A stretch of DNA of 64,000 nucleotides, from positions 248,001 through 312,000 of the forward strand of contig NZ_JMCB01000007.1 in NCBI RefSeq assembly GCF_000737315.1, written 5' to 3'. Both the position numbers and the translations under genes were made by a program. This DNA is from Hyalangium minutum (lineage in GTDB: Bacteria > Myxococcota > Myxococcia > Myxococcales > Myxococcaceae). This document shows positions 10,170-23,081 of this stretch, in pieces. The stretch's first letter is position 1. Each line of letters opens with the position of its first letter. Below the pieces are notes generated by a model. That model saw nothing but the letters and a program-made list of their open reading frames with translations, did not search any database and had not been told where the DNA came from.

Positions 10170-10258
10170 GCGGAAGGCGGAGGACTCGAACCTCAGACCG
10201 GGAGCCGGTCCGCACCCGCTAGCAACGGGGCCTGGTGCCATCACCAGTTCACTCTTCC
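10170..10258 (-). tRNA. tRNA-Ser(GCT)
   Basis: Acceptor GGAAGAG, loop TT-GCT-AG, long variable arm, T loop GTTCGAGTC, G73. Confidence 0.85.
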
Positions 10259-10264
10259 AAAAAA

Positions 10265-10349
10265 GCGGAGCGAGGTGGAGTCGAACCACAGGCCCGTTGG
10301 ACCCTCCTGGGTTCCAGCCAGGTTGCCGGCCGCCCGGCAATCACGCTCC
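10265..10349 (-). tRNA. tRNA-Ser(GGA)
   Basis: CCTGG-CTGGAAC-CCAGG, long variable arm, GTTCGACTC. Confidence 0.85.
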
Positions 10350-10366
10350 AAAACGGCACTGCACAT

Positions 10367-10451
10367 GCGGAAGACAGGGGACTCGAACCCCAAGCGCCGA
10401 GCACTCGCACCGCTTTCGAAACGGGCCACCGGCCTCCGGTGTTGGTCTTCC
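10367..10451 (-). tRNA. tRNA-Ser(CGA)
   Basis: CCGT-TTCGAAA-GCGG, long variable arm, GTTCGAGTC. Confidence 0.85.
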
Positions 10452-10607
10452 AGAAAAGGTGCTGGCAGCTGCGGACCCGCCTGCCAGCGCGCGGGGAGGC
10501 TCTACAGGTGGGGGCCGCCTCTGGCGCACCCCCGCTCCACCTTGTGCTCCGTTCCGGGGCGGAGCGGTGGCGGGGACCACCTCTGGTGACCCCCCATTTC
10601 CCGGGCC

Positions 10608-11150
10608 TCACTCCTCCAGCTCCGTGTGCCAGTAGGCGACATCACGGAGGAACTTCCGCCACGAGACGGGCATGCCCTTCTCGTAGATGAAGGTGAACTG
10701 CAGCGACTCCGGCAGCCGCTTGGGCTTCACCGGCTGCGTGCGCAGCGCCATGCCAGCCTGCGCGGGCGTCCGGTTGCCCTTCTTCTGGTTGCAGGGCACG
10801 CACGCGATCACCACGTTCTCCCAGGTCGTCTTGCCACCCTGGGCGCGGGGAATCACATGGTCGTACGTCGCCTCCGGCCGCGACACCTTCTTATGGCAGT
10901 ATTGGCACTTGCACCCGTCGCGCAGGTACACGTTGTCGCGGCTGAACTTCACGCCGCGGTGCCGCCACCGGAAGAAGCTCACGAACCGAATGATGGACGG
11001 CATCTTCAGCTCGAGAGTGACTGAGCGGACGAAACGGTCCTCGTACTCCTCGACCACCTCGACCTTGCCCTGCCAGATCAACATCATCGCGCGTTGCCAC
11101 GGAACCCGTGCAACGGGCTCGTAGGCCTGGCTCAACACCAGCGTCTCCAT
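10608..11150 (-). CDS. HNH endonuclease (McrA-like) embedded in the tRNA array
   Basis: METLVLSQAY.P, FSRDNVYLRD..KCQYC, TYDHVIPRAQGG, WEN.V.AC..CN..KGN. Confidence 0.9.
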   Translation of the reverse strand: METLVLSQAYEPVARVPWQRAMMLIWQGKVEVVEEYEDRFVRSVTLELKMPSIIRFVSFFRWRHRGVKFSRDNVYLRDGCKCQYCHKKVSRPEATYDHVIPRAQGGKTTWENVVIACVPCNQKKGNRTPAQAGMALRTQPVKPKRLPESLQFTFIYEKGMPVSWRKFLRDVAYWHTELEE

Positions 11151-11171
11151 GACACGGGGCCTTTCGGGAAA

Positions 11172-11246
11172 TGTCCGCGGCGAGGTTCGAACTCGCACGT
11201 GAGCTGGGTTTGAGCCAGCCGCCTCTCCCATTTGGGCCACGCGGAC
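11172..11246 (-). tRNA. tRNA-Leu(CAA), short variable arm
   Basis: GCTGG-CTCAAAC-CCAGC; 5-nt variable region; A73. Confidence 0.8.
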
Positions 11247-11273
11247 GGTTGTTGGGAGCTTCTGAGAAGGAAG

Positions 11274-11349
11274 TACCGCGGGCGGGATTCGAACCCGCAA
11301 CCTCTGCATTCTGAGTGCAGCGCCTCTACCAAGGTTGGGCTACCGCGGC
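11274..11349 (-). tRNA. tRNA-Leu(CAG), short variable arm
   Basis: CTGCA-CTCAGAA-TGCAG; 5-nt variable region; GTTCGAATC. Confidence 0.85.
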
Positions 11350-11363
11350 ATGAAAGGGTGAAG

Positions 11364-11437
11364 TGCCGGAAGAGGGAGTCGAACCCTCACTCGCCAGACT
11401 CTCGAGCTGGTGCCTCTACCTATTGGGCTACTCCGGC
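11364..11437 (-). tRNA. tRNA-Leu(GAG), atypical loop
   Basis: CCAGC-TCGAGAG-TCTGG, C33, short variable region. Confidence 0.65.
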
Positions 11438-11444
11438 ATTTGAG

Positions 11445-11517
11445 TGCACGCCCTGGGGATCGAACCCAGCGAAATCGGTGTGTGGGACCGACGCCGTCTC
11501 CAGCTGGCTCGGCGTGC
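11445..11517 (-). tRNA. tRNA-Val(CAC), atypical loop
   Basis: TCGGT-CCCACAC-ACCGA, C33. Confidence 0.65.
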
Positions 11518-11526
11518 ATGAGAAGT

Positions 11527-11596
11527 TGCGGAGCAGGGAGTCGAACCCTGCAGCCCTGGCGTATGAGACCCGGTGGGGCGTCCGGCCCCTCTCCGC
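11527..11596 (-). tRNA. tRNA-Met(CAT), degenerate
   Basis: Loop CT-CAT-AC, imperfect anticodon stem and short D arm, T loop GTTCGACTC. Confidence 0.55.
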
Positions 11597-11619
11597 ATCA
11601 AAATCAACGTGCTGCTGAG

Positions 11620-11693
11620 TGCCCCTGGCAGGAATTGAACCTGCGGCCTCACGGTTCGGAGCCGTGCACTCTCATCCACTGAGCTACAGGGGC
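11620..11693 (-). tRNA. tRNA-Arg(CCG)
   Basis: CACGG-CTCCGAA-CCGTG; TAGCTCAGTGGATGAGAG D arm. Confidence 0.85.
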
Positions 11694-11703
11694 AAAACTG
11701 AAG

Positions 11704-11777
11704 CGGTCCCGGCAGGACTCGAACCTGCGACCCCACGGCTCGCAACCGTGTGCTCTCATCCACTGAGCTACGGAACC
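11704..11777 (-). tRNA. tRNA-Arg(GCG)
   Basis: CACGG-TTGCGAG-CCGTG; D arm same as neighbouring Arg(CCG). Confidence 0.8.
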
Positions 11778-11792
11778 AAAAAGACAAGGAAG

Positions 11793-11863
11793 TGGACCCG
11801 CCGGGATTCGAACCCGGGTCGCTCGGGTGCAAACCGAGCATTCTCCCGCTGAACTACGGGCCC
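11793..11863 (-). tRNA. tRNA-Ala(TGC)
   Basis: CTCGG-TTTGCAC-CCGAG; G3-U70 present (GGGCCCG/CGGGTCC). Confidence 0.85.
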
Positions 11864-11879
11864 AAAATTCACTGCTGAG

Positions 11880-11951
11880 TGGAGCCGCCGGGGATTGAAC
11901 CCGGGACCTCTCGGATGCGAACCGAGCGCTCTCCCGCTGAGCTACGACCCC
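11880..11951 (-). tRNA. tRNA-Ala(CGC)
   Basis: CTCGG-TTCGCAT-CCGAG; G3-U70 present. Confidence 0.85.
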
Positions 11952-11955
11952 ATGA

Positions 11956-12027
11956 AGCTGCTGGCGGGACTCGAACCCGCATTGTCCTGAGTGGCGCTCA
12001 GGTGCCTCACCTCTCGGCCACGGCAGC
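11956..12027 (-). tRNA. tRNA-Gly(GCC), atypical loop
   Basis: CCTGA-GCGCCAC-TCAGG, U73, G32/C33. Confidence 0.7.
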
Positions 12028-12050
12028 AAAACCTACGTCGGTACTTCGAG

Positions 12051-12123
12051 AGCCCTCGGCCGGAATCGAACCGGCGACACCCTGTTTACGAAACAGGTGC
12101 TCTGCCTACTGAGCTACAAGGGC
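12051..12123 (-). tRNA. tRNA-Thr(CGT)
   Basis: CCTGT-TTCGTAA-ACAGG. Confidence 0.85.
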
Positions 12124-12126
12124 AAA

Positions 12127-12196
12127 TGGCAGGCCGCCAAGGAGTTGAACCCTGCTGCTCGGATTTGGAGCCCAAGCTGCTCCCGGAGCGCGACCC
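12127..12196 (-). tRNA. tRNA-Trp(CCA), short D arm, encoded 3' CCA
   Basis: Loop CT-CCA-AA, G73 followed by CCA. Confidence 0.65.
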
Positions 12197-12216
12197 ATCA
12201 ACCAGTGAAGAAGAAG

Positions 12217-12289
12217 TGCCGTCTCCTGGAATTGAACCAGGTCCTCCTGCTTTTCAGACAGGCGCGCGAACCATCTACGCCAAGGCGGC
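12217..12289 (-). tRNA. tRNA-Phe(GAA)
   Basis: CCTGT-CTGAAAA-GCAGG. Confidence 0.8.
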
Positions 12290-12306
12290 AAAACATCGAC
12301 TGCGAG

Positions 12307-12377
12307 CGCTCCTGCAGGGAATCGAACCCTGTTCACGTGGTAGACGGCCACGCCGCGATCCAATCGCGTCCAAGAGC
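12307..12377 (-). tRNA. tRNA-Asp(GTC), atypical loop
   Basis: CGTGG-CCGTCTA-CCACG, G73, C33 and U37. Confidence 0.65.
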
Positions 12378-12400
12378 AAGGGAAGGGTGCTTCACTTCAG

Positions 12401-12472
12401 TCGGGGCACCTGGACTCGAACCAGGATTGCTCGCGTATCAGACGAGAGTCTTTGCCTTTGGACCATACCCCG
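12401..12472 (-). tRNA. tRNA-Ile(GAT)
   Basis: CTCGT-CTGATAC-GCGAG. Confidence 0.75.
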
Positions 12473-12493
12473 AAGTGCTACAAGTGTTACAAG

Positions 12494-12567
12494 TCTGGGT
12501 GGCAGGACTTGAACCTGCGACCTCACGGATCCGAACCGTGCGCTCTACCAAGCTGAGCCACACCCAG
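12494..12567 (-). tRNA. tRNA-Pro(CGG)
   Basis: C1-G72, CACGG-TTCGGAT-CCGTG. Confidence 0.85.
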
Positions 12568-12576
12568 ATAAACAAG

Positions 12577-12652
12577 TCGGGATGACTGGATTCGAACCAG
12601 CGGCCTCACGCACCCCAAGCGTGCGCTCTCATCCAAGCTGAGCTACATCCCG
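12577..12652 (-). tRNA. tRNA-Pro(GGG)
   Basis: C1-G72, CACGC-TTGGGGT-GCGTG. Confidence 0.85.
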
Positions 12653-12669
12653 ATGAAACATGCTGCGAG

Positions 12670-12742
12670 CGCCTCGTGCGGGAGTCGAACCCGCCTTTCC
12701 ACATTGAGAGTGTGGCGGCCTAAACCGATAGCCGAACGAGGC
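12670..12742 (-). tRNA. tRNA-Glu(CTC)
   Basis: CCACA-CTCTCAA-TGTGG, G73. Confidence 0.8.
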
Positions 12743-12755
12743 AAAAAGACTGGAG

Positions 12756-12826
12756 AGGCTTGTGCGGGAGTTGAACCCGCCACCAGACGGTTTTGCAGAC
12801 CGCCGCCGCCCCGGGCGGAACAAGCC
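12756..12826 (-). tRNA. tRNA-Cys(GCA)
   Basis: GCGGT-CTGCAAA-ACCGT, U73. Confidence 0.75.
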
Positions 12827-12832
12827 AAGATG

Positions 12833-12905
12833 CTCGGAGGGAGGGACTCGAACCCTCAACCCCGCGGTTAACAGCCGCGTGCTCTGCCAGTTGAGCTACC
12901 TCCGA
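12833..12905 (-). tRNA. tRNA-Asn(GTT)
   Basis: U1-A72, CGCGG-CTGTTAA-CCGCG, G73. Confidence 0.9.
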
Positions 12906-12917
12906 ATACTGCTTCAG

Positions 12918-12989
12918 CGCCGAGAGAAGGATTCGAACCTTCGTTTACGGGTTCAGAGCCCGCCGCCCTGCCAATTGGACCATCTCGGC
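12918..12989 (-). tRNA. tRNA-Gln(CTG)
   Basis: GCGGG-CTCTGAA-CCCGT, G73. Confidence 0.8.
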
Positions 12990-13004
12990 ATACCGACAAG
13001 GTGA

Positions 13005-13075
13005 AGCGGGTGACGGGACTCGAACCCGTGTCACTGGCTTGGGACGCCAGAGTCTTGCCACTAGACGACACCCGC
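13005..13075 (-). tRNA. tRNA-Gly(CCC)
   Basis: CTGGC-GTCCCAA-GCCAG, U73, GCGGGTG acceptor. Confidence 0.8.
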
Positions 13076-13087
13076 GTGTGCTGCGAG

Positions 13088-13158
13088 TACCCCCGGAGGG
13101 AATCGAACCCTCACCGTCCGCTTAAGAGGCGGATGCTCGACCAATGAGCTACGGAGGC
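13088..13158 (-). tRNA. tRNA-Lys(CTT)
   Basis: TCCGC-CTCTTAA-GCGGA. Confidence 0.85.
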
Positions 13159-13204
13159 GTTTGACCGCCCCCGTGCAAGCGGGCGGACGAACTTCACCAC
13201 TGCG

Positions 13205-13223
13205 ATTCAGTTGTCAGAGAACA
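13205..13223 (-). promoter_or_regulatory. rrn-type boxA antitermination-like element
   Basis: Minus strand TGTTCTCTGACAACTGAAT resembles rRNA-operon boxA context (GTTCTTTGAAAACTGAA), in the first array spacer. Confidence 0.5.
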
Positions 13224-13256
13224 AGGGACTGCCTTGGAACTGCTCACACTGCTGAG

Positions 13257-13342
13257 TGGGGATGCTGAGAGTTGAACTCAGTGGGCCGTCGAGCGGCTCC
13301 GGAGTTACAAGCCGGTGCGTCTCCGTAACGCGCTACATCCCC
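13257..13342 (-). tRNA. tRNA-Tyr(GTA), first gene of the array
   Basis: GGGGATG/CATCCCC acceptor, loop TT-GTA-AC with a mismatch closing the stem, long variable arm, A73. Confidence 0.7.
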
Positions 13343-13353
13343 AGGAAGTGATG

Positions 13354-13425
13354 CGAGGTGATGCTTTGAAAACAGCGAGGCCGGGTTCCCCTTCGGGAGC
13401 CCGGCCTCTGTGCGACGTCACCTCG
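13354..13425 (-). other. Nested stem-loop immediately 5' of the first tRNA (terminator/attenuator or processing hairpin)
   Basis: Inner hairpin 13377-13408 GAGGCCGGGCTCCC-GAAG-GGGAACCCGGCCTC followed by GCTGTTTT; outer pair CGAGGTGA/TCACCTCG. Confidence 0.55.
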
Positions 13426-13447
13426 GGAGGGGAGGAGCCGTCGGCAT

Positions 13448-13600
13448 TCAGAAGCCGGGTAGTCTGTTCCAGTACCACTGGGATTCGACCGAGAAAACCG
13501 GAGCGGTGACCAGACTGGGACGCGGGAGCGAATCGATGCAACCGGCAAAGTTGTCAGTGTGCTTGGGGTTCATCGCGCTCTGCAGCGTCACCGTTGTCAT
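13448..13600 (-). CDS. Putative 50-aa leader peptide of the tRNA operon
   Basis: SD GAAAGGAG 8 nt before ATG; MTTVTLQSAMNPKHTDNFAGCIDSLPRPSLVTAPVFSVESQWYWNRLPGF*. Confidence 0.5.
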   Translation of the reverse strand: MTTVTLQSAMNPKHTDNFAGCIDSLPRPSLVTAPVFSVESQWYWNRLPGF

Positions 13601-13626
13601 GGTCACCGCTCCTTTCAGCGAGAAAA

Positions 13627-13651
13627 GACGCGGCAATAAATGCTTCCTGAC
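13627..13651 (-). promoter_or_regulatory. Candidate ECF-sigma promoter 1 (tRNA operon)
   Basis: GTCAGGAA-N13-CGTC. Confidence 0.7.
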
Positions 13652-13787
13652 GCGCACGTGGATTTTCCACGCGCCCATCAGGCTCGAGTTCTTTTGCTGG
13701 CTTCTTTAAAGCGCTCAGCCAGCTTTATTAAGGAAGGGAATCTGTCTTCCTTTCGATGCCGAGCTGCGTGCCGAGGCCCAGGGCGGG

Positions 13788-13829
13788 AAAAAGAAAAAGG
13801 CCCCGGAGCACGAAGCTCCGAGGCCTTTT
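13788..13829 (-). terminator. Intrinsic terminator after the small Ubl-like gene
   Basis: AAAAGGCCTCGGAGC-TTCG-TGCTCCGGGGCC followed by TTTTTCTTTTT. Confidence 0.85.
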
Positions 13830-14149
13830 CATGTACCGATACTGGGCGCCGCCGACTCCAGATTCTCCGCCGTACCGCACCAGCTTCCCTGCTTCGCTGG
13901 GGCGCCGAACGGGACCTTCGGCCGCAGGTAGATGCGATCCTCGCCGCGTGCCCCACGGAAGCGGTCCACGACGTAGTTCTGGAAGGCATCGTCGCGAAGG
14001 TGGACCAGGTGCATGCCCGGCACGCCGCCGGAGCGCACGACTTCCACCGCGATGCGCCGCACGTCTGCGTCCGACACGTGCCCGTCCAACTCCACCGGCA
14101 CGTCGGCGGACATCCCGTCATAGGTGATGTTGAGCGTCGTCATCGCCAT
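13829..14149 (-). CDS. Small conserved-looking hypothetical protein, possibly ThiS/MoaD/ubiquitin-like
   Basis: SD AAAGGA; TLNITYDGMSADVPV...NYVVDRF...RIYLRPKVPFG pattern of alternating beta-strands and one helix; fold is a guess. Confidence 0.6.
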   Translation of the reverse strand: MAMTTLNITYDGMSADVPVELDGHVSDADVRRIAVEVVRSGGVPGMHLVHLRDDAFQNYVVDRFRGARGEDRIYLRPKVPFGAPAKQGSWCGTAENLESAAPSIGT

Positions 14150-14203
14150 CACATCCTTTCACTTGGAGCGGACCGCGAGTCGCGGCCGGTCCAGGTGGCC
14201 TGG

Positions 14204-14229
14204 GACGCGTACCTTGTCGCGTTCCTGAC
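14204..14229 (-). promoter_or_regulatory. Candidate ECF-sigma promoter 2 (Ubl-like gene)
   Basis: GTCAGGAA-N14-CGTC. Confidence 0.7.
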
Positions 14230-14279
14230 AGCCCCGACCAGTCGAAAGAGGGACAGACAGGCGGGTATGCTCCGCGCCC

Positions 14280-15824
14280 ATGAAAAGAACCCTTCCTGGT
14301 GTCAGAGTCGCTCTCACCCTCATGGCCCTCCTGGGGGTTTCCCTGGTGGGCTGTAGCAGCGAGGACGTCGCCCCGACTCCCGCAGGCGGGAGTGTCGATG
14401 TTCAGTTCGACGTGGCCGTGCCCGCCAGCACCCCCTGTAGCGCCACAGTGGAGGTGGTCGGCAATGATCCGGCGCTTGGGGGTGGAAAGTCTCCGGGTCT
14501 GGCGCTCAAGCGTGACGTGGACGGCCACTTCCGGGGCTCGGGTACATTCACGGTGGGGAAGGTACTCACCTACAACTTCGTGCTGACCCATCCCTCCGCG
14601 CAGGAGCCCATCGCTTTCCACAGCTACATGGTGGAGAACCGCCGGAACATCCAGCGCCAATGGACCGTCAGCAAGTGGTCCGTGGCCCCGGACCCGGAGC
14701 ACTTGCCTACCCTCTTCGTGGTCGATGTGCCCGCAAGCACGCCCGCGAATTCGGAGATCTGGCTGTCCGGCAACCAGGAGTCGTTGGGCAACTGGAATGG
14801 CGCGGGTGTGCAGCTGGCTCAGAGCTACTCGAGCGAGCGCAGTTATGTCACCTGCCTGGAGTTCTCGCCGGGCACCAACCTGGAGTTCAAGGCGACCCGC
14901 GGTTCGTGGGACTCGGTGGAGAAGGATGCCCAGGGTGGGGAGATCAACAACCGCTTCCACCGCGTGGACGCTCCGTCCACCGTGGCGGCCCAGGTGGGCT
15001 CGTGGCGTGACCTGGTTCCCGAGGAGCCGCGTCCGGACACGCTCACCGGCAACATCAAGTACCACGAGGTGGACGGGTCTGCTTATGGCCTGAAGAATCG
15101 CCAGCTCATTGTCTGGCTGCCTTCCAACTACGACACCGACACGAACGCCCACTACCCGGTGCTTTACATGCATGACGGCCAGAACCTGATGAATGTGAAG
15201 ACGTCTGCCTTTGGTGTTGAGTGGGGCGTGGACGAGACGGCGCAGCAGCTCGTCGAGGCCGGGCAGATCGAGCCCATCATCATCGTGGGCATCTACAACA
15301 CCGTGGACCGTGTCCTCGAGTACACGCAGATGCCCAGCCCGCCGCGCGACGGTGGCAAGGCGGATGACTACGGTCGCCTGCTGGTGGAGACCATCAAGCC
15401 GCTCATCGACTCGACATATCGGACGAAGCCGGAGCCGGAGTACACCGGTCTGGCGGGCTCGTCGCTGGGGGGGCTCGTGTCCATGTACTTGGGCCTCACG
15501 CACGGCGACACCTTCACGCGGCTCGGCGTTATCTCTCCCTCCGTTTGGTGGGCCAGTCGAGACATTGTCTCGCGCGTCAACGCGCTCTCCGACAAGAAGC
15601 CGCTGCGCATCTGGTTGGACATCGGGACCGAGGAGCTTGGGAGCGACGCGGATAACCAGGAGACCGTGGACGACACTCGGTTGCTGAGGGATGCGCTCAT
15701 CGCCAAGGGCTGGGTGCTGGATGGCGACCTCAAGTATCTCGAGGCAGAGGGCGGCCGGCACAACGAGGCTTCCTGGCGGGCCCGCATGGACCAGATCCTC
15801 AAGTACCTCTACCCGGCGCACTGA
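14280..15824 (+). CDS. Lipoprotein: CBM20-like domains plus alpha/beta-hydrolase (putative esterase)
   Basis: Lipobox LVGC; SGNQESLGNW, LEFKATRGSW (CBM20-like); YPVLYMHDGQN, GSSLGG, HNE..W. Confidence 0.85.
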   Translation: MKRTLPGVRVALTLMALLGVSLVGCSSEDVAPTPAGGSVDVQFDVAVPASTPCSATVEVVGNDPALGGGKSPGLALKRDVDGHFRGSGTFTVGKVLTYNFVLTHPSAQEPIAFHSYMVENRRNIQRQWTVSKWSVAPDPEHLPTLFVVDVPASTPANSEIWLSGNQESLGNWNGAGVQLAQSYSSERSYVTCLEFSPGTNLEFKATRGSWDSVEKDAQGGEINNRFHRVDAPSTVAAQVGSWRDLVPEEPRPDTLTGNIKYHEVDGSAYGLKNRQLIVWLPSNYDTDTNAHYPVLYMHDGQNLMNVKTSAFGVEWGVDETAQQLVEAGQIEPIIIVGIYNTVDRVLEYTQMPSPPRDGGKADDYGRLLVETIKPLIDSTYRTKPEPEYTGLAGSSLGGLVSMYLGLTHGDTFTRLGVISPSVWWASRDIVSRVNALSDKKPLRIWLDIGTEELGSDADNQETVDDTRLLRDALIAKGWVLDGDLKYLEAEGGRHNEASWRARMDQILKYLYPAH

Positions 15825-15926
15825 GAGGCCGCACGCCCGGTCCGCAAGGAGCCGGGCGGCAACCTACGTAGGAAGTAGGGTTCATTCCTCCTGACCTGGT
15901 GGGTACACTGGGTCAGGAGGTGGTAC

Positions 15927-16658
15927 ATGGACCTGAAGCTTCTGCATGACTGGAACGTCACGCCCCAAGAGGCTGTGGCGCTCCAGAACTCCCTGCGTGA
16001 GCGGCTCGTGCTTCGAGCTCCCTCGGGGTTGAGAGTGTCCCGAGTCGCCGGTGCGGATATCTCCACCGAGCGTGGCAATGACACCGGGTACGGGGCCTTT
16101 GTGGTCCTCGACGCGGAGTCACTGGCCCCTGTCTCTCAGCAGGGTGCTGAGGCCCCGCTTGGCTTTCCCTACGTGCCAGGTCTGTTGTCGTTCCGGGAGC
16201 TACCCGTGCTCGCGGCCGCTTGGATGCGCTTGGAGTCCGCGCCCGATTTGCTCGTCTTCGATGGGCAAGGCACAGCTCACCCTCGCCGCATGGGAATTGC
16301 CTGCCATGGCGGTCTGCTCTTTGGCGTGCCGTCCATTGGGTGTGCCAAGTCGCTGCTGGTGGGCTCGCACGGTCCCCTAGGTGAAGAACGCGGCGCAACG
16401 GCGGAGATCCGGCACCGAGGTGAGGTGATCGGCATGGCGGTGCGGACGCGCCGGGGCGTCAGTCCCGTCTATGTCTCTCCTGGCCACTTGATGGACCTGC
16501 CCACCGCCGTGGAGTGGGTCCTTCGCTTGAGCCCTCGCTACCGCGAGCCGGAGACGACACGGCACGCGCATCGGCTCGTCAATGTGCTGCGCCGCCAGGC
16601 CCATGGAGGTTTGCAGGGTGACGTGTGTGGCCAGTGGGGAAGGGCATGGTCACCTTGA
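15927..16658 (+). CDS. nfi: Endonuclease V (deoxyinosine 3' endonuclease)
   Basis: VAGADIS, FPYVPGLLSFRE, DGQGTAHPRRMGIA.H.G, IGCAKS.L.G, V.VSPGH, YREPETTRHAH. Confidence 0.95.
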   Translation: MDLKLLHDWNVTPQEAVALQNSLRERLVLRAPSGLRVSRVAGADISTERGNDTGYGAFVVLDAESLAPVSQQGAEAPLGFPYVPGLLSFRELPVLAAAWMRLESAPDLLVFDGQGTAHPRRMGIACHGGLLFGVPSIGCAKSLLVGSHGPLGEERGATAEIRHRGEVIGMAVRTRRGVSPVYVSPGHLMDLPTAVEWVLRLSPRYREPETTRHAHRLVNVLRRQAHGGLQGDVCGQWGRAWSP

Positions 16659-16767
16659 AGCCGCGACGGAGGTTGTCCATGGCTGAGAATCGTGAACCCA
16701 CCCAGGCCCCCGAGGTGAATGCACGGCAGGGGACCACTCAGAGAGACGTACCCCTAGCCCGCAAATG

Positions 16768-16811
16768 AGAGGCGCCACCTCCCCGGAGTGCTCCGGAGAG
16801 GTGGCGCCTCT
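16768..16811. terminator. Strong hairpin between convergent nfi and vWA genes
   Basis: AGAGGCGCCACCTC...GAGGTGGCGCCTCT with inner CCGGAG-TG-CTCCGG. Confidence 0.7.
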
Positions 16812-16817
16812 ATTGGC

Positions 16818-18581
16818 TCAGGCCGCCTTCAGCAGCGGCGTGCGCATCACGCGCTCCACCCAGCCAGACTGGCTCACGCCAGCCGCCTTCGGCGCGTCCA
16901 GCAGCGCCTTCAGCACCCGCGGCACCTGGTAGGGGTCCGCGAACTGGTCCACCGACACCTCGCTGAACGGCACCTGCAGCTGGCCCGCGCACGTCCGCAC
17001 GGTGTTACCCCGTGCGCTCGCCACGCTCACCATCAGCGCCAGCGCCGCCACCGTGTAGCCGCACTCGCGGAAGGCCCGCGCGAACTGGTCGCCGGCCTCG
17101 CCCGCCTCGTCGCCCACCACGATGACCACGAGCTTCGCCTCCGCCGGCACCTTCACGCCGTCCCGGTGCAGAGCGTGCACCGCGGCCGCGTGCGTCGTAC
17201 CGCCAGACGCCTTGATGCCCTGCAGCATGTGCTGCACTGCCATGCGGCTGGACACCTTCGGCTTGAGCACCGTGCCCACCGTGTCGAACGACGCGATGTG
17301 CAGCTTCTCCAGCGGGAAGCCCGCGAGGATGCGCGTGAGCGCCTCCTTGGACTGCTCGATGGCCCCCTCCATGGAGCCGGACTTGTCGATGAGGAACATC
17401 ACCCGCACGTCCGTCTCCGCCGTCGCCTCCGCCACTGCCTGCCGGGCTGCGTTGTCGCTCGCCTCCTCCAGCTTCTCTCGCAGCTCCTTGCTCCGGACGT
17501 TCTTCGCGATGTGGAGCGCCCGCTGGTCCGTTGCCGTCTGCACGGCCTTCTCCCAGCGCGCCCGGATGGTGGGCTCCGACAGCAAGCCCAGCTCCTCCAG
17601 CGTTGGCGTCATCATCCGCATGTCCCGGTCCGACAGCGACGGCAGCAGCGCCACCATGATGGCCGGCGTGAGCCCCACGTCCTTCGGCAGGCGGCCCACC
17701 ACCTCCTTGAAGGAGAGCTTCTGCGACTCGATGGTCTCGCAGATCTCCGCCTCGGAGAGCCCGTCGAAGCGCTCGCGCTTGACCAGCCGCAGGCCCTCGA
17801 GGCCCACCGCCCGGTGGCCCCCGCTGGACTGCTTCTGCTTCCAGCCGAGCACCTCGAAGAACGCCTGCGTCTCCGGCTTGTAGCCGGCCTTGCGGGCGAG
17901 CTTCTTCAGCGTCTCCTTGAAGCCGGCCTTCACCAGACCCTCGAGCATCGGCAGGTTCTTCTCCCGCGCCTGGAGCCACTTCTGCGCCACGCGCTTCCAG
18001 CGGCCCAGCGGCGGCCGCTTGGAGCCGGGGTCACCGAACCCCGCCTCGCGGTTGAGCCGCGCGATCTCCGGCGTCTCGAGCAGCTCGGCCACTCGCAGCA
18101 CCGCCTTGGGCGTGAGCATGCGCGTGGACTTGCGCTCGTAGTGCAGGATCATCGCCTCGCCGATGGCCCGGTGGTCGTCGTCGAAGAAGGCGACCGTGCC
18201 GTCGTCCTCACGAACCGGCTGACCCGCGTGGCCCTGCACCAGCATCAGCGCGCAGGTCGCCACCTTCAGGTCACGCCAGTCCGTCTGCGTCAGCGCGTAG
18301 GACGCGAAGTGCGCCATCAGGTCCGTGTTGAGCTTGTAGATGTCCAGGATCTGCCGGTACAGCTTCACCGCCGCCGGCACGAAGAGGCCCGGGCTCACCC
18401 GCGTCGCCTTGGCCGGGATCGCCGCGTTGCCGCGGGGCGCCGGCTGCCAGACGCCGTTGAGGTCGAGGCCCGGCCGGTTGTGCCACAGGTGGGCGGAGCC
18501 GTTGAGCACGAGCTCGAGCAGCCGCTCGGCGGGCCCGCGCTGTGCCTCCGGAATCATCGGGGTGTTCTGCTTCGTCGTCAT
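16818..18581 (-). CDS. Divergent Ro60/TROVE-like protein with C-terminal vWA domain
   Basis: vWA MIDAS MFLIDKSGSM, GGT, VVGDE; helical N-terminus with GRWKRVAQKWL and LKKLARKAGYKP resembling TROVE motifs; flanked by Y-RNA-like genes; SD GGAGGG. Confidence 0.65.
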   Translation of the reverse strand: MTTKQNTPMIPEAQRGPAERLLELVLNGSAHLWHNRPGLDLNGVWQPAPRGNAAIPAKATRVSPGLFVPAAVKLYRQILDIYKLNTDLMAHFASYALTQTDWRDLKVATCALMLVQGHAGQPVREDDGTVAFFDDDHRAIGEAMILHYERKSTRMLTPKAVLRVAELLETPEIARLNREAGFGDPGSKRPPLGRWKRVAQKWLQAREKNLPMLEGLVKAGFKETLKKLARKAGYKPETQAFFEVLGWKQKQSSGGHRAVGLEGLRLVKRERFDGLSEAEICETIESQKLSFKEVVGRLPKDVGLTPAIMVALLPSLSDRDMRMMTPTLEELGLLSEPTIRARWEKAVQTATDQRALHIAKNVRSKELREKLEEASDNAARQAVAEATAETDVRVMFLIDKSGSMEGAIEQSKEALTRILAGFPLEKLHIASFDTVGTVLKPKVSSRMAVQHMLQGIKASGGTTHAAAVHALHRDGVKVPAEAKLVVIVVGDEAGEAGDQFARAFRECGYTVAALALMVSVASARGNTVRTCAGQLQVPFSEVSVDQFADPYQVPRVLKALLDAPKAAGVSQSGWVERVMRTPLLKAA

Positions 18582-18678
18582 GGTCCCCTCCGGGAACGTG
18601 TTGCGGGTGAGTCGGAACGAAGCGGGCACCGGAACCAGCCGGTACCCGCCTCGGGTGGAAGTAGGTGAAAGGGAAAAG

Positions 18679-18821
18679 GTGCGCCCGAGTGGCGAAGCCA
18701 CGACGACCCTGTGGAAGGGCAGTGCTCTACCAGGCTGAGCTACGGGGCCATGGAGCGGCCCCGGCGGGAGTTGAACCCGCGACCCCTGCAGTGCTTGTAG
18801 GGCCTCACCGGCCGGGCGCTC
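18679..18821 (-). ncRNA. YrlA-like Y RNA (circularly permuted tRNA mimic)
   Basis: Order T arm (GCGGG-TTCAACT-CCCGC), acceptor hairpin (CGGGGCC-GCTCCAT-GGCCCCG), D arm (TAGCTCAGCCTGGTAGAGC); closed by GCAG/CTGC and terminal GCGCCCG/CGGGCGC stem. Confidence 0.8.
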
Positions 18822-18840
18822 AATCAGATGAGATGCAGGC

Positions 18841-19548
18841 TCACGAGAAGACGTTCACGTCTCCGTGCACCGGGAACAGCGCGACGTCTTTGCCGCCCCG
18901 GTAGGACTGCCTCGCGGGTACCGAGACGAGCTCCCACGAGGGGAGAACCACCGCGGTGAGCGAGCGTCCGTAGACACAGCCCGTGTCGATGCCGACCGCG
19001 TGCTCTGTCACCAGCGGCTTGTCGAACACCGTGTGCCCGAAGATGACGCGCTCGGGGCCCTTCCAGTGGTGCGTCCAGAATCGATGCGTCGCTGGCGCCT
19101 TCGAGGGCCAGTAGCTCTTCTTCTCTGGAGGCTGGATGCACTGGGCGTGGAGCAGGTGGTACGGATCCTGCGACTCGATGGGCTTGTGGGGCATCACTCC
19201 CGCGTGCACCACGACGGCGTTGTACTCAGGCAGCCGGATGTAGAGCGGGAGCTTGGCGAAGTAGTCCAGGTGCTCGGGTTCGAGCGCCCGCCGCGTCTCC
19301 AGGTGGTCCGGCGAGAGCCGGTCGTCCGAGCGGCGGCGCTGTTGAAGGTGCGACTCCTCGTGGTTGCCCTGGATGGCCTCGTACTTCATGGCCAGCTCCA
19401 CGCACTCGCGGCGCTTGGGGCCTCGGTCCACGAGGTCTCCCGCGAAGATGATGCGGTCGCTGGAAGTCGCGCCCACCTTGGCGAGCAGCTCGAGGGCCTC
19501 GTCGTAACAGCCGTGCAGGTCGCCGATGACGATGGTTCGGGGAGACAT
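18841..19548 (-). CDS. Calcineurin-like metallophosphoesterase (ApaH/PP1/Pnkp-phosphatase-like)
   Basis: IGDLHG, GDLVDRG, GNHE, VHAG, FGHT, IDTGCVYG. Confidence 0.9.
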   Translation of the reverse strand: MSPRTIVIGDLHGCYDEALELLAKVGATSSDRIIFAGDLVDRGPKRRECVELAMKYEAIQGNHEESHLQQRRRSDDRLSPDHLETRRALEPEHLDYFAKLPLYIRLPEYNAVVVHAGVMPHKPIESQDPYHLLHAQCIQPPEKKSYWPSKAPATHRFWTHHWKGPERVIFGHTVFDKPLVTEHAVGIDTGCVYGRSLTAVVLPSWELVSVPARQSYRGGKDVALFPVHGDVNVFS

Positions 19549-19568
19549 GGGACAACACCTCAAGAATG

Positions 19569-19704
19569 GAGCGCCCGAGTGAGGAAGCCGTAAGTTGCGC
19601 TGAATTCACGGTTCAGTGTCGGGACCCCCCGACGGCATCGCCCTGATGGGAGAAGGGTGGAGTCGAACCACCGGAGCTTGTAAGGCCTCTTCGGCCAGGC
19701 ACTC
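19569..19704 (-). ncRNA. Second Y-RNA-like gene
   Basis: Terminal stem GAGTGCCTG/CGGGCGCTC, GCCGAAG motif, T arm GGTGG-TTCGACT-CCACC; 5' and 3' ends paralogous to 18679-18821. Confidence 0.7.
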
Positions 19705-19723
19705 TAAAAGAGTTGCCGCCAAG

Positions 19724-19748
19724 GACGCCGCCTCCCCTGGTTCCTGAC
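19724..19748 (-). promoter_or_regulatory. Candidate ECF-sigma promoter 3 (Y RNA / Ro operon)
   Basis: GTCAGGAA-N13-CGTC about 20 nt upstream of the Y-RNA stem. Confidence 0.7.
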
Positions 19749-19784
19749 GGCGGATTTTCCGGCTCCAGCCTTCCCCGGCCTTCT

Positions 19785-19810
19785 GTCAGGAACCTGGAAA
19801 AGCCCCCGTC
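19785..19810 (+). promoter_or_regulatory. Candidate ECF-sigma promoter 4 (autoregulatory, sigma gene)
   Basis: GTCAGGAA-N14-CGTC on the + strand, divergent from promoter 3. Confidence 0.7.
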
Positions 19811-19974
19811 TTGCTCTGCGACGCCCCCCTACCTGTCCGTTCACCGGCGGTGGGGGTCCCCGTCATCGGAGGATGCCTGCGGATGCCATCGTGGTACCTT
19901 GCCGAGCCGTGGATGCCCCGCCCACCCGCCAGGTGGGGAGGCACTGAACTCCTCGGCGCTACCAGGTTCCTTCG

Positions 19975-20640
19975 GTGTACGACCAGCTCTCGGATGACGA
20001 ATTGTTCGCGGAAGTCTCCCGACGCCGCGCGGCCGGCGAGTCCTTCAATGGACCGCTCGGCGCGCTTGTCGAGCGGTGGGGCCGTCCCGCCCGTTATGTC
20101 ATCGGCAAGATCCAGGCCAGCTATGGCCGGGGCTCTCCCGCGGATGGGGATGAGCTCTTCCAGGATGCCGTGGGGAAGTTCATCTCCCGCGGCCTCGACC
20201 AGTTTCGCGGCATCTCCGAGCACATGCCCGGCAAGGCCGCTTCCCCCAAGACGTTCTTCCTGCGAATCGTCAAGCACGTCGCCATCGACTTCTACCGGCG
20301 GCAGCGCGAGGAACTGGCCCCAGCGCCCAGCGACCCGGACGACACCATGGAGGAGTCTCCTTCCGAGATGGCGCAGGCCGTGGAGAAGGCCAAGCGCACC
20401 GAGGAGCGCTCGGACGCTCAAGAGCTCTACTGGGCAGCGTTTGCCCGCCTCCAACAAGAGCACCCCAAGGAGGCTGGCGCGTGGGAGCTGTACCACCACC
20501 AAGATGTGGAGGACCACGAAGAATGCGCCCGTCTGCTGAACATCACCGTGGTCAACTCCTACAAGCGCGTCAGCCGCGCGCAGGCCTACCTCAAGCTGTA
20601 TCTGCTCGAGTTGAAGCAGACAGCCGAGGGAGGGGACTGA
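19975..20640 (+). CDS. ECF-type RNA polymerase sigma factor
   Basis: DGDELFQDA.. / FFLRIVKHVAIDFYRR (region 2), EECARLLNITVVNSYKRVSRA (region 4 HTH). Confidence 0.85.
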   Translation: MYDQLSDDELFAEVSRRRAAGESFNGPLGALVERWGRPARYVIGKIQASYGRGSPADGDELFQDAVGKFISRGLDQFRGISEHMPGKAASPKTFFLRIVKHVAIDFYRRQREELAPAPSDPDDTMEESPSEMAQAVEKAKRTEERSDAQELYWAAFARLQQEHPKEAGAWELYHHQDVEDHEECARLLNITVVNSYKRVSRAQAYLKLYLLELKQTAEGGD

Positions 20641-20680
20641 GTCCCCGCTTTTCGTTCCATCTCTTCTCTCGAGGTTCGCG

Positions 20681-21865
20681 ATGAGTGACGCTCTCTCCCG
20701 TTATCAGGCCCGGCATCAGCAGCTCTCCAGTGGTTCCTCCTCCGTGGGAGGTACCCTCGAAGCCGCAGGAGATCTGCTTCGTCGTAGCTCTCGCGTCGGA
20801 GTGCAAGCCGTGGAGCCAGCGCTGCGCGCGGTGACTCGACCTCAGATCGAGACATGGCTGCAGAGTCAGAAGCCCGCCGAGCTTCGGACCCAGTTGCTCA
20901 AAGCCGCCGAGGAAGCTGTCGAGGTCGCGCTGGGAGAAGGTGGCGACGAGGCGGAGATGTGGCGAACTTCGGCGATGGATGGGTTGTCCGCGCGAGATCG
21001 CGCCGCCTCCGCCGCCCGCGCACTGGGGCAGTGGGAGGCCCTCCACGGAGCCCTGACGGGGCCCGCAGCGCAACGGCGGGACGATTTTCTCCAGGCCCTC
21101 GGGAATCTCGATAACGCGCTCCGCCCGAGGGCCCGCTGGTTCATCCCCCTGAACCCGCAACGCAGACAAGAGCGCGACCTGCTCGACTCTTCCGAGCAAG
21201 CGCAGGCCTGGTGGTTCTCTGCCCGGGCCGACTGTGATGACTTGGTGGCTACCTGGACGCAGCAGCCCCAGTCCCTCTCTCCTCACCTTCAGAGCTGTGC
21301 CGACTGCCGCGACGATCTCGCGGACACCGCCATCGTTGATCAGCCTCCTGCCCGTCACGTGAGCGCCGATGAGCTGTGGCGCCTCGACGTGGGACTGCTG
21401 TCCACCGACGAGCGCGCTCGCATCGAGTCGCATACCGCTCAGTGCTCCGACTGTGCCCAGGCTGTGCTGGCCCTCGAGGAGGGTGACGCCGCCATTGATG
21501 AGGCTCTGGAGATGGAGGCAGAGGGCTCCACGGGGCCGGGTCTTGCCGCGCGCACCTCGCGGGAGGCTGTTCCTCGCCGCCCCGGTGCCCGTCTCCCCGA
21601 GCAGCGCGAGGTGCTGGAGGAGCGCCGCGATTTTCGCGTGCTCCTCGTGCGTGAGCGCCAGCGCGTGAGGCTCCTGGTGCAGCCGCTCTCTGGCCGCACC
21701 GTCACTGCCGCCGTGTTCACTGCTCCCGGCAAGCCCTCGATCAAGCCGACTCAGGGGCCCGAGGGGATTTCCTTCGAGCTCGGCGCCGACGGTGGTGGCA
21801 CGCGCTCCGCTCACCTCACCGTGATGGCCGGCGGAGAGACCCTGGAGCGCGACTTCTCCTACTGA
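20681..21865 (+). CDS. Soluble anti-sigma-like protein with two HxxxCxxC zinc motifs
   Basis: HLQSCADC and HTAQCSDC (second in zf-HC2 context LSTDERARIESH..QC..C); no obvious TM helix; directly after sigma. Confidence 0.65.
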   Translation: MSDALSRYQARHQQLSSGSSSVGGTLEAAGDLLRRSSRVGVQAVEPALRAVTRPQIETWLQSQKPAELRTQLLKAAEEAVEVALGEGGDEAEMWRTSAMDGLSARDRAASAARALGQWEALHGALTGPAAQRRDDFLQALGNLDNALRPRARWFIPLNPQRRQERDLLDSSEQAQAWWFSARADCDDLVATWTQQPQSLSPHLQSCADCRDDLADTAIVDQPPARHVSADELWRLDVGLLSTDERARIESHTAQCSDCAQAVLALEEGDAAIDEALEMEAEGSTGPGLAARTSREAVPRRPGARLPEQREVLEERRDFRVLLVRERQRVRLLVQPLSGRTVTAAVFTAPGKPSIKPTQGPEGISFELGADGGGTRSAHLTVMAGGETLERDFSY

Positions 21866-23070: not shown

Positions 23071-23081
23071 GGCGCCATTCC

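Follow-up and report, generated by a model that had tools for sequence, protein, structure and literature searches.

A predicted sigma/anti-sigma regulon joins a Ro60-like Y RNA operon, RtcB and a long tRNA array in Hyalangium minutum

We analyzed a 64-kb stretch of the Hyalangium minutum genome (contig NZ_JMCB01000007.1, positions 248,001 to 312,000; hereafter the window), which has a GC content of 67% and a GC content at third codon positions (GC3) near 0.9 in coding sequence. The window holds a set of transcription units preceded by the same bipartite promoter motif. They encode a Ro60-like protein with two Y RNAs and a phosphoesterase, a ubiquitin-like (Ubl) protein, an array of 27 tRNA genes with an HNH endonuclease gene, and an extracytoplasmic function (ECF)-type sigma factor next to its candidate anti-sigma factor. 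Our preferred reading, to which we assign a probability of about 60%, is that these parts form a sigma/anti-sigma regulon that would deploy an RNA-surveillance ribonucleoprotein (RNP), an end-trimming phosphoesterase, the RNA ligase RtcB and spare tRNAs, with the tRNA array further gated by a translation-sensing attenuator.

For comparison, we fetched 80 loci that encode relatives of the Ro60-like protein, which carries a VWA domain, and mapped genes and motifs on each (numbered from L001 where a single locus must be named). The window protein shares 93–94% identity with its relatives in the Hyalangium loci. Read 5' to 3', one minus-strand block of the window consists of a motif, the Ubl gene, a terminator, a second motif, a leader open reading frame (ORF), a hairpin, 24 tRNA genes, the HNH gene and three tRNA-Ser genes. 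The other minus-strand unit consists of a motif, Y RNA 1, the phosphoesterase gene, Y RNA 2 and the Ro60-like VWA gene. A divergent plus-strand unit comprises a motif, the sigma gene and the gene for a 394-aa zinc-finger protein, and between both minus-strand blocks lie a plus-strand esterase/CBM20 gene and an endonuclease V (EndoV) gene. The features of the predicted regulon are given below by their positions in the window.

10170 to 10451, minus strand: three tRNA-Ser genes (cga, gga, gct; ARAGORN for two, Rfam clan match and anticodon loop for the third)
10608 to 11150, minus strand: HNH endonuclease gene in the array, 180 aa (HNH_5, E = 2.8e-17)
11172 to 13342, minus strand: 24 tRNA genes, Tyr to Leu-caa (ARAGORN; Rfam tRNA for 19 of them)
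13368 to 13410, minus strand: GC-rich hairpin and T run, candidate attenuator (≈-29 kcal/mol, in the interval from leader to first tRNA)
13448 to 13600, minus strand: 50-codon leader ORF with a GAAAGGAGCG ribosome-binding site (same position in seven arrays of two genera)
13627 to 13651, minus strand: motif 5' of the leader ORF and tRNA array (exact; kept in L002–L005)
13794 to 13830, minus strand: intrinsic terminator after the Ubl gene (16-bp stem, then a T run)
13829 to 14149, minus strand: gene for a Ubl beta-grasp protein fused by deletion to a C-terminal E1-like (ThiF) remnant (AlphaFold2 (AF2) model; ≈107 codons)
14204 to 14229, minus strand: motif 5' of the Ubl gene (exact; kept 5' of Ubl homologs in ≈21 loci)
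16818 to 18581, minus strand: gene for the Ro60-like protein, with a helical N-terminal domain and VWA, 587 aa (VWA_2, E = 4e-8)
18680 to 18824, minus strand: Y RNA 2, YrlA-like with a tRNA-like module (Rfam YrlA; covariation; covariance model R1, 126.9 bits)
18841 to 19548, minus strand: gene for a calcineurin-like metallophosphoesterase of the PnkP phosphatase/ApaH/PrpE type, 235 aa (Pfam Metallophos, E = 2.9e-15)
19570 to 19707, minus strand: Y RNA 1, a YrlB-like paralog with a T-arm-like hairpin (covarying structure; covariance model R1, 65.5 bits)
19724 to 19748, minus strand: motif 5' of Y RNA 1 (exact; kept in ≈33 loci)
19785 to 19810, plus strand: motif GTCAGGAAC-N13-CGTC 5' of the sigma gene (exact; kept in ≈27 loci)
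19975 to 20640, plus strand: gene for the ECF-type sigma factor, 221 aa, divergent from the Y RNA operon (Sigma70_r2, E = 2.2e-6)
20681 to 21865, plus strand: gene for the soluble anti-sigma candidate, 394 aa, with two HxxxCxxC motifs (zf-HC2 at residues 238–259, E = 1.9e-6)
58807 to 58832, plus strand: degenerate motif GTCAGGcgc-N..-CGTC, ≈125 nt 5' of rtcB (the only extra match to the relaxed pattern)
58956 to 60380, plus strand: gene for the RNA ligase RtcB (Pfam RtcB, E = 2e-90)

The units are tied together by the motif. Within the 64 kb, GTCAGGAA-N13/14-CGTC occurs at exactly four sites, each of which is intergenic, placed like a promoter and pointing at the unit downstream of it. Two are exact matches with the N13 spacer and two with the N14 spacer, where chance would give ≈0.4 per spacing even with one mismatch allowed. 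The shorter pattern CAGGAA-N12-16-CGTC has six matches against 0.8 expected, a number that no shuffle reached. Relatives in at least six genera (Hyalangium, Myxococcus, Corallococcus, Pyxidicoccus, Archangium and Cystobacter) keep the motif at these four kinds of position, 5' of the tRNA array, the Ubl gene, the sigma gene and the operon with the Y RNAs and the Ro60-like gene; the 80-locus comparison covers Citreicoccus and Vitiosangium as well. The -10 element of the Y RNA 1 copy lies ≈15–20 nt upstream of the terminal stem of that RNA, and the array copy varies in Myxococcus, with a CGTA -10 element in Myxococcus sp. CA033 (L081) and a GTCAGGAT -35 element in Myxococcus sp. Y35 (L025). Across loci, GTCAGGAA and CGTC(C) are invariant while the letters of the spacer vary, and by this comparison the shared motif is the phylogenetic footprint of a promoter. 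The original prediction, a note made from the letters of this region alone, had placed the same bipartite motif before all four units, and the four exact sites and their conservation across genera bear it out.

The protein encoded at the 3' end of the Y RNA operon probably works like Ro60 and would be a remote homolog of it, a view that we base on its modeled fold and its Y RNA partners. In the AF2 model (pLDDT 74, pTM 0.48), residues 1–386 are helical and residues 390–560 form the VWA domain, whose metal ion-dependent adhesion site residues, DxSxS...T...D, are intact and invariant. The best Foldseek matches in the PDB, over ≈560 columns, are Ro60/TROVE structures (9kop, 9nep, 1yvp, 2i91, 1yvr and the Ro60 of phage phiLo; E = 4e-8 to 6e-6), and a phage 'Ro-like RNA binding protein' ranks second in the Foldseek viral library. 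Membership in the TROVE family by sequence was considered and rejected, every sequence method having returned VWA alone. Where the original prediction had described an operon of Y RNA, metallophosphoesterase, Y RNA and Ro60-vWA genes, both Y RNAs and the phosphoesterase stand, and the VWA protein may be called Ro60-like by its modeled fold but not TROVE by its sequence.

Both Y RNAs have conserved secondary structures. Cross-genus alignments contain 13/31 compensatory pairs for Y RNA 2 and 12/31 for Y RNA 1; for Y RNA 2, 98.8% of cells are paired, 0 of 500 shuffles match the observed covariation, and slid controls collapse. The two RNAs have a terminal stem in common, GCGCCCGGCCG...GGCUUC..CACUCGGGCGC, which would be the stem by which a Y RNA binds its protein. 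The Rfam YrlA model (RF02553) matches Y RNA 2 at 18694–18801 on the minus strand (E = 2e-8) with 47.9 bits, below the gathering score of 69 for that family; the alignment is near-perfect in both arms (T and D) of the tRNA-like module, and the stem differs. With a covariance model built from Y RNA 2, we also found copies directly 5' of the VWA gene in distant lineages, three of them in a Polyangiaceae metagenome-assembled genome (MAG), L076. The VWA gene is thus accompanied by adjacent Y RNAs with both a terminal stem and a tRNA-like module, as expected for the Ro60 family.

The phosphoesterase between the two Y RNAs has the metal motifs GDLHG, GDLVDRG and GNHE of the calcineurin-like fold. It matches the NCBIfam models bacter_Pnkp (E = 7e-22) and ApaH (E = 4e-26) as well as PrpE; ApaH and PrpE score as well as PnkP or better, and all of these equivalog matches are far under their cut-offs. 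It consists of a single domain, without the kinase and ligase that PnkP carries in the same protein.

The Ubl gene opens a second line of relationships. Its AF2 model is a beta-beta-alpha-beta-beta beta-grasp with a core pLDDT of ≈90. The ≈1100 homologs, mostly 81 aa long, share an invariant C-terminal RIYLRPKVPFG, after which comes Ala or a short tail, so that the family combines a beta-grasp with the exposable C-terminal glycine of Ubl modifiers. A Foldseek search against the PDB gave no significant match, although mostly beta-grasp/UBL domains were returned. The homologs lie directly 5' of a ThiF/E1-like gene (≈190 aa) in 34 loci, and the E1-like protein matches Pfam ThiF (7e-22), PDB structures of Uba4, ThiF and MoeB, and the E1 domain of the E1-E2 type of cyclic oligonucleotide-based antiphage signaling system (CBASS). 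Immediately 3' of the Ro60-like gene, other loci carry a gene for a 338-aa protein, p338, and then a JAB-like gene. Distant Myxococcota MAGs (L059, L066, L076, L078–L080) have the Ro60-like, p338, JAB, Ubl and E1 genes in one contiguous operon, a gene order by which the Ro60-like gene is, as we read it, ancestrally linked to the other four. No Pfam or PDB relative of p338 was found, even with a 17-sequence profile.

In the window, much of this operon is gone. The p338 and JAB genes are missing at this locus in the window and in its closest relatives (L001–L005), and a deletion of ≈530 bp relative to H. versicolor (L002) took most of the window E1 gene and joined Ubl in frame to the last ≈24 E1 codons, which accounts for the odd C-terminal tail of the window protein. 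A cognate E1 and JAB accompany Ubl in most relatives and not in the window. The 'Ubl-like' protein of the original prediction accordingly has the beta-grasp fold that the name implied, but it is the remnant of a larger Ubl-E1 pathway, fused to the C terminus of E1. Three Hyalangium-like loci (L028, L030 and L032) represent a second Ro60-like locus at 79% identity, with tandem Y RNAs, p338 and JAB and without the sigma-type motif; the regulated and unregulated paralogs may have diverged in role. Since these paralogous loci keep p338 and JAB, supply in trans would be possible in related genomes.

This history raises the possibility, in our view an improbable one, that the Ro60-like/Y RNA module is not a repair particle and belongs instead to a Ubl-E1-JAB pathway that acts on or via tRNA-like RNAs and has decayed in the window. 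Such a pathway might thiolate tRNA or Y RNA in the manner of TtuB/TtuC or Urm1/Uba4, or it might tag translation factors with the VWA protein as adaptor. Nearly all other loci do have the Ro60-like-p338-JAB and Ubl-ThiF/E1 gene sets, contiguous in the distant MAGs; the E1-like protein has the matches listed above; and the invariant Ubl glycine is followed by at least one residue, which would need JAB-type trimming. However, neither an E2 nor a sulfurtransferase domain was recognized, p338 lacks Pfam and PDB relatives, and both RtcB and the PnkP-like enzyme suggest that RNA ends are healed and sealed. Moreover, the regulon, with its Y RNAs and Ro60-like protein, persists in the window clade without local p338, JAB or E1. 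Because the RNP has been kept after their loss, it should have a role without them, with the reservation that both p338 and JAB could come in trans from paralogs such as those of L028, L030 and L032.

In the tRNA array, ARAGORN called 26 minus-strand tRNAs between 10170 and 13342. The 27th, tRNA-Ser(cga) at 10367–10451, is supported by the Rfam clan match and its anticodon loop and occupies the equivalent place in L005, so the total of 27 is correct; the 27-tRNA operon with an HNH gene named in the original prediction is present as described. We set the true start of the HNH gene at METLVLS (ORF 11150..10608), and the gene consequently does not overlap a tRNA. It occupies the same place in the arrays of L002–L005, L025 and L081. 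With 27 genes in 3.2 kb for 19 amino acids, the array is, like known long tRNA arrays (L-arrays), longer than 20 genes, tightly spaced, non-periodic, patchy in distribution and supernumerary, and it shares with them an associated HNH gene and a signal in common with rtcB.

All anticodons of the array begin with G or C except Ala-UGC, and with a host GC3 of ≈0.9 the array thus fits host codon usage. Its three Leu tRNAs, at 75–77 nt, have no long variable arm, and some of its tRNAs lack U8 or U33, oddities that are kept in related arrays. The 97 nt that separate tRNA-Tyr from tRNA-Lys were considered as a possible tRNA-His, which was rejected; the gap holds a conserved element that is not a tRNA. 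This spacer (13159–13255, minus strand), with the form TCTCTGACAACTGAATCG..GTGGTGAA.. plus a GC hairpin, is also present in L004 and L081 and so is conserved in more than one genus; it may encode a small RNA or serve as a signal for processing. A 28th ARAGORN call, a 'tRNA-Met' at 26701–26782 on the plus strand, is a false positive inside a uvrD/pcrA-type helicase gene (24971–27295).

Between its promoter motif and its first tRNA, the array has a conserved leader. Seven arrays from two genera share the layout of motif, GAAAGGAGCG, an ORF of 43–52 codons, ≈40 nt, hairpin, T run and tRNA, with GAAAGGAGCG strictly kept and the hairpin arms AGAGGCCGGGCUCCC...GGGNACCCGGCCUCU invariant in all seven. 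When folding is halted before the 3' arm of the hairpin, the 5' arm pairs instead with the end of the leader, namely its final codons and stop codon. The partner segment reads ...ACCCGGYUUCUGA in the Hyalangium clade, and CA033 (L081) has a different yet complementary GCCCG/CYCY beside the stop codon. In Y35 (L025), a similar segment is apparent by eye; the automated fold, for which the leader ORF was mis-called, paired the arm mostly with the middle of the ORF. The leaders of the window and three close relatives contain all 20 amino acids in 50 residues, as do 0.3% of real 50-aa windows here, a feature to which we give little weight because it is absent from the Myxococcus leaders. Leader and hairpin together suggest, from their possible pairings, a translation-sensing attenuator that would act as a second, independent gate on the array, and this candidate goes beyond what the original prediction contained.

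That the array and the Ro60-like operon merely lie next to each other seems unlikely to us. By this account, a mobile L-array with its HNH gene landed in a variable segment between the sigma locus and a backbone of ClpB-RF-like and RNase J genes, where it captured or mimics a local promoter, and the Ro60-like operon has nothing to do with it. L-arrays are known to transfer horizontally (PMC8421152), and homologs of the HNH protein are borne on plasmids of L-array-rich taxa, among them Nostoc, Tolypothrix, Acaryochloris and Mycobacterium. The HNH gene was considered as a marker of plasmid L-arrays and set aside; the two neighborhoods that we inspected contain the translation genes metG and gluQRS. 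The segment is indeed variable, having been reduced in Stigmatella to the sigma/anti-sigma pair, the phosphoesterase and EndoV. The units are separated by unrelated esterase and EndoV genes, and the array is lacking in most Myxococcaceae in which the sigma, Y RNA and Ro60-like genes are retained. What mere juxtaposition leaves unexplained is the regulon motif at the array promoter in two genera, the anticodons adapted to a GC-rich host, and the repeated association of arrays with the Ro60-like gene. Arrays at this locus take different forms, with 21–27 genes in the Hyalangium clade and 8–16 in some Myxococcus, in the same gene order and with HNH in the same place. In the Polyangiaceae MAG L076, an unrelated pair of arrays with HNH brackets the entire Ro60-like-p338-JAB-Ubl-E1 operon. 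Differently composed arrays thus recur beside the module in three lineages, once enclosing the operon, and this recurrence favors functional coupling over chance. The array also has no long phage match: an origin from phages was rejected, only short single-tRNA matches being found in mycobacteriophages and Caulobacter phages.

A further unit of the regulon is probably rtcB, located 37 kb from the module. The relaxed pattern GTCAGG-N15-17-CGTC has five matches in the window against 1.0 expected, and the fifth is the site upstream of rtcB, the sole match beyond the four exact sites. Three metagenomic RtcB relatives with 84–86% identity also have such sites, a full GTCAGGAAG-N12-CGTC in L086 and degenerate variants in L104 and L108. 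Together, the relaxed match and these sites make rtcB a probable, if weaker, member of the regulon on motif evidence, in keeping with the variant that the original prediction had noted before this gene. Between the motif and the rtcB start, the window, L086, L104 and L108 share an element in the 5' untranslated region, GCGACCGCGGCTGCTGACCCRAGGTCC (58860–58890, plus strand), which is possibly an RNA element or operator.

The candidate for the factor that reads the motif is the sigma factor encoded divergently from the Y RNA operon. AAC and CGT cores together with a copy 5' of the sigma factor's own gene typically mark an ECF sigma that controls its own transcription. Here, an anti-sigma candidate is co-encoded and GGAAC...CGTC lies 5' of the sigma gene in ≈27 loci, and it is from this autoregulation logic alone that we infer recognition of the motif by the adjacent sigma. 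The pair is syntenic in ≈40 loci, where the anti-sigma gene always adjoins the sigma gene, and a synteny comparison places the pair divergent from the operon wherever both occur. The anti-sigma candidate is soluble as far as its sequence goes. Its zf-HC2 match scores 28.3 bits against a cut-off of 22.2, and its HxxxCxxC motifs, as in zinc-binding anti-sigma (ZAS) factors, lie at about residues 201–211 and 250–258, one of them passing the zf-HC2 cut-off and the additional one reading HLQSCADC; the zinc domain is oddly placed, at about residues 200–260 of 394. No PDB relatives were found for either protein. These features suggest a cytoplasmic ZAS-type anti-sigma, possibly with a thiol- or zinc-dependent signal, which would fit thiol/redox sensing as well as 'translation stress'. 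The divergent ECF sigma beside a double-zinc anti-sigma candidate was thus correctly called in the original prediction. Its proposal of one ECF switch for all units holds for the conserved shared motif and the syntenic pair, whereas recognition of the motif by this sigma is an extrapolation from them.

The least probable of the alternatives, that a different regulator (another ECF sigma, such as that encoded at 24252..23611, or a DNA-binding protein) reads the motif and the adjacent pair is merely a target, draws on the atypically short AAC-to-CGTC spacing, the poor recognition of the sigma by profiles, the presence of a second sigma with a zf-HC2 partner 3 kb away, and an Archangium motif 5' of the Ro60-like gene with no sigma gene within 10 kb, but ≈27 loci have the motif 5' of the present sigma gene, the second one (24252..23611) has none upstream of it, and the strictly oriented motif, with its constant spacing, a spacer of varying sequence and a place just 5' of the Y RNA 1 stem, looks like a promoter rather than an operator.

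The regulon that we favor would work as follows. A soluble, ZAS-like zinc-finger anti-sigma would hold the ECF-type sigma, which on release would transcribe its own gene and the motif-bearing units from promoters of the form GTCAGGAAC-N12/13-CGTC. The first unit, with Y RNA 1, the PnkP-type phosphoesterase, Y RNA 2 and the Ro60-like protein, would supply an RNA-surveillance particle and an end-trimming enzyme acting on 2',3'-cyclic or 3'-phosphate RNA ends. The second would be the Ubl gene, ancestrally Ubl and E1, with p338 and JAB behind the Ro60-like gene; the third, the leader ORF followed by the 27 supernumerary tRNA genes and the HNH gene; and the fourth, probably, RtcB. At the array, a ribosome at the leader stop codon would mask the pairing segment and the terminator would form. 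If the leader were poorly translated, its 3' end would instead pair with the 5' arm of the terminator as an antiterminator, allowing read-through into the array. Synthesis of replacement or decoy tRNAs would then require both an active sigma and failing translation. A more ambitious version we entertain tentatively and consider rather doubtful: a myxobacterial translation-damage response built around a divergent Ro60-like/Y RNA particle, ancestrally associated with Ubl-E1-JAB and repeatedly coupled to arrays, in which the Myxococcaceae have brought all parts, including RtcB, under one switch and gate the array with leader translation as the sensor.

Several observations weigh against the regulon. 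For the Ro60-like protein, Pfam, NCBIfam, phmmer and a profile search against the PDB yield VWA only and no TROVE domain (PF05731), nor was TROVE found by Pfam scans of distant family members collected in a profile search of 1.8 billion representatives. The Foldseek TM scores to Ro60/TROVE are 0.35–0.41, obtained from a model with a pTM of 0.48, so the resemblance to Ro60 is at the level of the fold. The sigma scores 27.8 bits with Sigma70_r2 (cut-off 24), Pfam does not see its region 4, and TIGR02937 covers residues 31–209 with 37.4 bits, below its cut-off of 42.9. The AAC-to-CGTC distance of 12–13 nt is under the ≈16–17 nt of classical ECF promoters, and because of this short spacing another factor could read the motif. 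The rtcB site of the window lacks AAC. In the array, tRNA-His is missing, the Rfam tRNA model does not recognize the Val, Met, Trp and Asp tRNAs even at E ≤ 1, and the array as a whole is accessory, being absent from most of the Myxococcus, Corallococcus, Archangium and Cystobacter loci that keep the regulon. The 5' arm of the terminator is invariant, which means that covariation cannot probe the antiterminator. Finally, to judge by its gene content, the Ubl pathway at the window locus is decayed.

The predicted regulon resembles several known systems in part. The Salmonella rsr-yrlBA-rtcBA operon encodes Ro60, two Y RNAs, RtcB and RtcA under the control of RtcR and sigma-54. As in that operon, a Ro60-type protein is encoded here beside two Y RNAs, one of them a YrlA match, and is tied to RtcB and an end-modifying enzyme. 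Unlike in Salmonella, control would lie with a sigma/anti-sigma pair and an ECF-type motif, rtcB is 37 kb distant, a PnkP/ApaH-type phosphoesterase stands where Salmonella has the RtcA cyclase, the Ro60-like protein has no TROVE domain by sequence, and there are additional links to a tRNA array and to Ubl/E1/JAB genes. The phosphoesterase likewise aligns to the calcineurin-like phosphatase domain of PnkP in the PnkP/Hen1 system (E = 7e-22), but it is a stand-alone 235-aa phosphatase without the kinase, the ligase or the Hen1 methyltransferase.

The trn L-array of Anabaena sp. PCC 7120, with 26 tRNAs, the HNH gene all8564, a co-regulated rtcB and the repressor TrcR (PMC8421152, PMC10272220), is induced together with HNH and rtcB by translational stress (PMC8421152). 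Both it and the present array are long and supernumerary, include HNH and some atypical tRNAs, and share a promoter signal with rtcB. In Anabaena, however, a repressor acts on direct repeats over a sigma-70 promoter, whereas the Hyalangium array has an alternative-sigma motif and a leader with a terminator, is chromosomal, and is predicted to be co-regulated with a Ro60-like/Y RNA operon. A myxobacterial precedent for the control of a multi-unit stress or defense locus by an ECF sigma/anti-sigma pair, as predicted here, is DdvS/DdvA of Myxococcus xanthus, which controls a CBASS/CRISPR-Cas island (PMC11506125). DdvA is transmembrane, unlike the soluble candidate with two HxxxCxxC motifs described here, and the cargo in the window is RNA repair and tRNAs rather than CBASS/CRISPR.

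The ancestral Ubl operon is similar to CBASS Cap2/Cap3, Bil/Bub and ThiS/MoaD/TtuB in having a small Gly-ended beta-grasp protein, a ThiF-type enzyme and JAB in a conserved neighborhood. It differs from bacterial Ubl-E1-JAB systems in lacking a recognizable E2, in its minimal E1 of ≈190 aa and in its link to a Ro60-like/Y RNA module; PADLOC matches its E1 domain only, and the pathway is truncated in the window. The candidate attenuator follows the pattern of trp/his leader attenuation, a short leader ahead of an intrinsic terminator of which one arm can pair with the leader. The proposed sensor would differ in being occupancy of the stop-codon region, and hence general translation efficiency, instead of stalling at a single amino acid, with a tRNA array as the cargo. 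What is new relative to these known parts is the combination of alternative-sigma and leader-attenuator logic, the divergent Ro60-like family, its Ubl link, and the placement of all units under one signal. The literature search gave no description of the combination, in line with the original prediction, although a mention in Burroughs & Aravind 2016 or Sim et al. 2020 is possible.

Long tRNA arrays, RtcB repair and Ro60/Y RNA particles have each been described before; at this locus, one promoter signal ties them together. With a dedicated sigma/anti-sigma pair in the genetically tractable Myxococcus, loss of one anti-sigma should turn on the whole response, making the role of bacterial Ro60 and spare tRNAs directly testable. 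Bacterial Ro60-like proteins may also be under-counted because this family is invisible to TROVE profiles, and the genomic link between a Ro60-like RNP and Ubl/E1/JAB genes is unreported. The candidate attenuator would let the cell gauge its translation capacity before investing in new tRNAs, which would be relevant to resistance to anticodon nucleases, ribotoxins and translation-targeting antibiotics from soil competitors.

Downstream of the array lies one further gene that we considered for the regulon.

7283 to 10096, minus strand: gene for a ClpB-like AAA+ ATPase with a fused RF2-like PCRF domain that has neither GGQ nor SPF (AAA_2, E = 7e-36; PCRF, E = 2e-17)

This gene starts 73 nt 3' of the tRNA array and is followed by RNase J and YajQ genes. 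It is a core gene of the Myxococcaceae and also lies 3' of the array in L002 and L081. We rejected it as a firm member of the regulon, since it is part of a conserved backbone even without the array; its membership is uncertain because it is present in Stigmatella, where the site has no array, Ro60-like gene or Ubl gene, and the segment 5' of it contains the sigma/anti-sigma pair, the phosphoesterase and EndoV only. The encoded protein has 937 aa with a double AAA+ module (ClpB/ClpA-like), is 60–96% identical across the Myxococcaceae, and is always annotated as 'AAA family ATPase'. From its domains, it may be an unfoldase aimed at the ribosomal A site. Nothing on such a ClpB-RF-like fusion was found in the literature.

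The EndoV gene (15927–16658, plus strand) is a near-constant opposite-strand neighbor of the module in most related loci. EndoV enzymes as a class also cleave inosine-containing RNA, and the gene is kept in Stigmatella beside the sigma/anti-sigma pair and the phosphoesterase. The second sigma gene (24252..23611, minus strand) is followed by two features in different frames, a zf-HC2 motif (within 23924..23082) and a conserved 550-codon ORF (23511..21859); this locus (21859–24252, minus strand) may contain a frameshift or a mis-set start.

PADLOC gave zero matches for the Ro60-like protein, the phosphoesterase, Ubl, the anti-sigma, p338 and JAB. Elsewhere in the window, two genes at 27371–29094 on the plus strand match the PADLOC candidate defense system HEC-01 (HEC-01A, E = 1.5e-157; HEC-01B, E = 1.6e-64) and are followed by a SIR2-family gene (29016–29921). 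The segment 51691–53772 on the plus strand encodes a polymorphic-toxin-like protein, whose C-terminal domain is an AHH nuclease, followed by an Imm11 immunity protein. No ORF passes the coding filter of GC3 > 0.72 between ≈32.7 and 37.4 kb. The segment 32272–37159 holds a DDE transposase fragment (32272–32688) and a 1214-aa Kelch/Big-domain protein (33515–37159), and its composition and content suggest horizontally acquired DNA. A 2044-codon ORF at 40144–46278 on the minus strand has internal repeats of ≈270 bp, seen as periodic 83-codon antisense ORFs at 41396–43015, and probably encodes a large repetitive protein of the surface/adhesin type.

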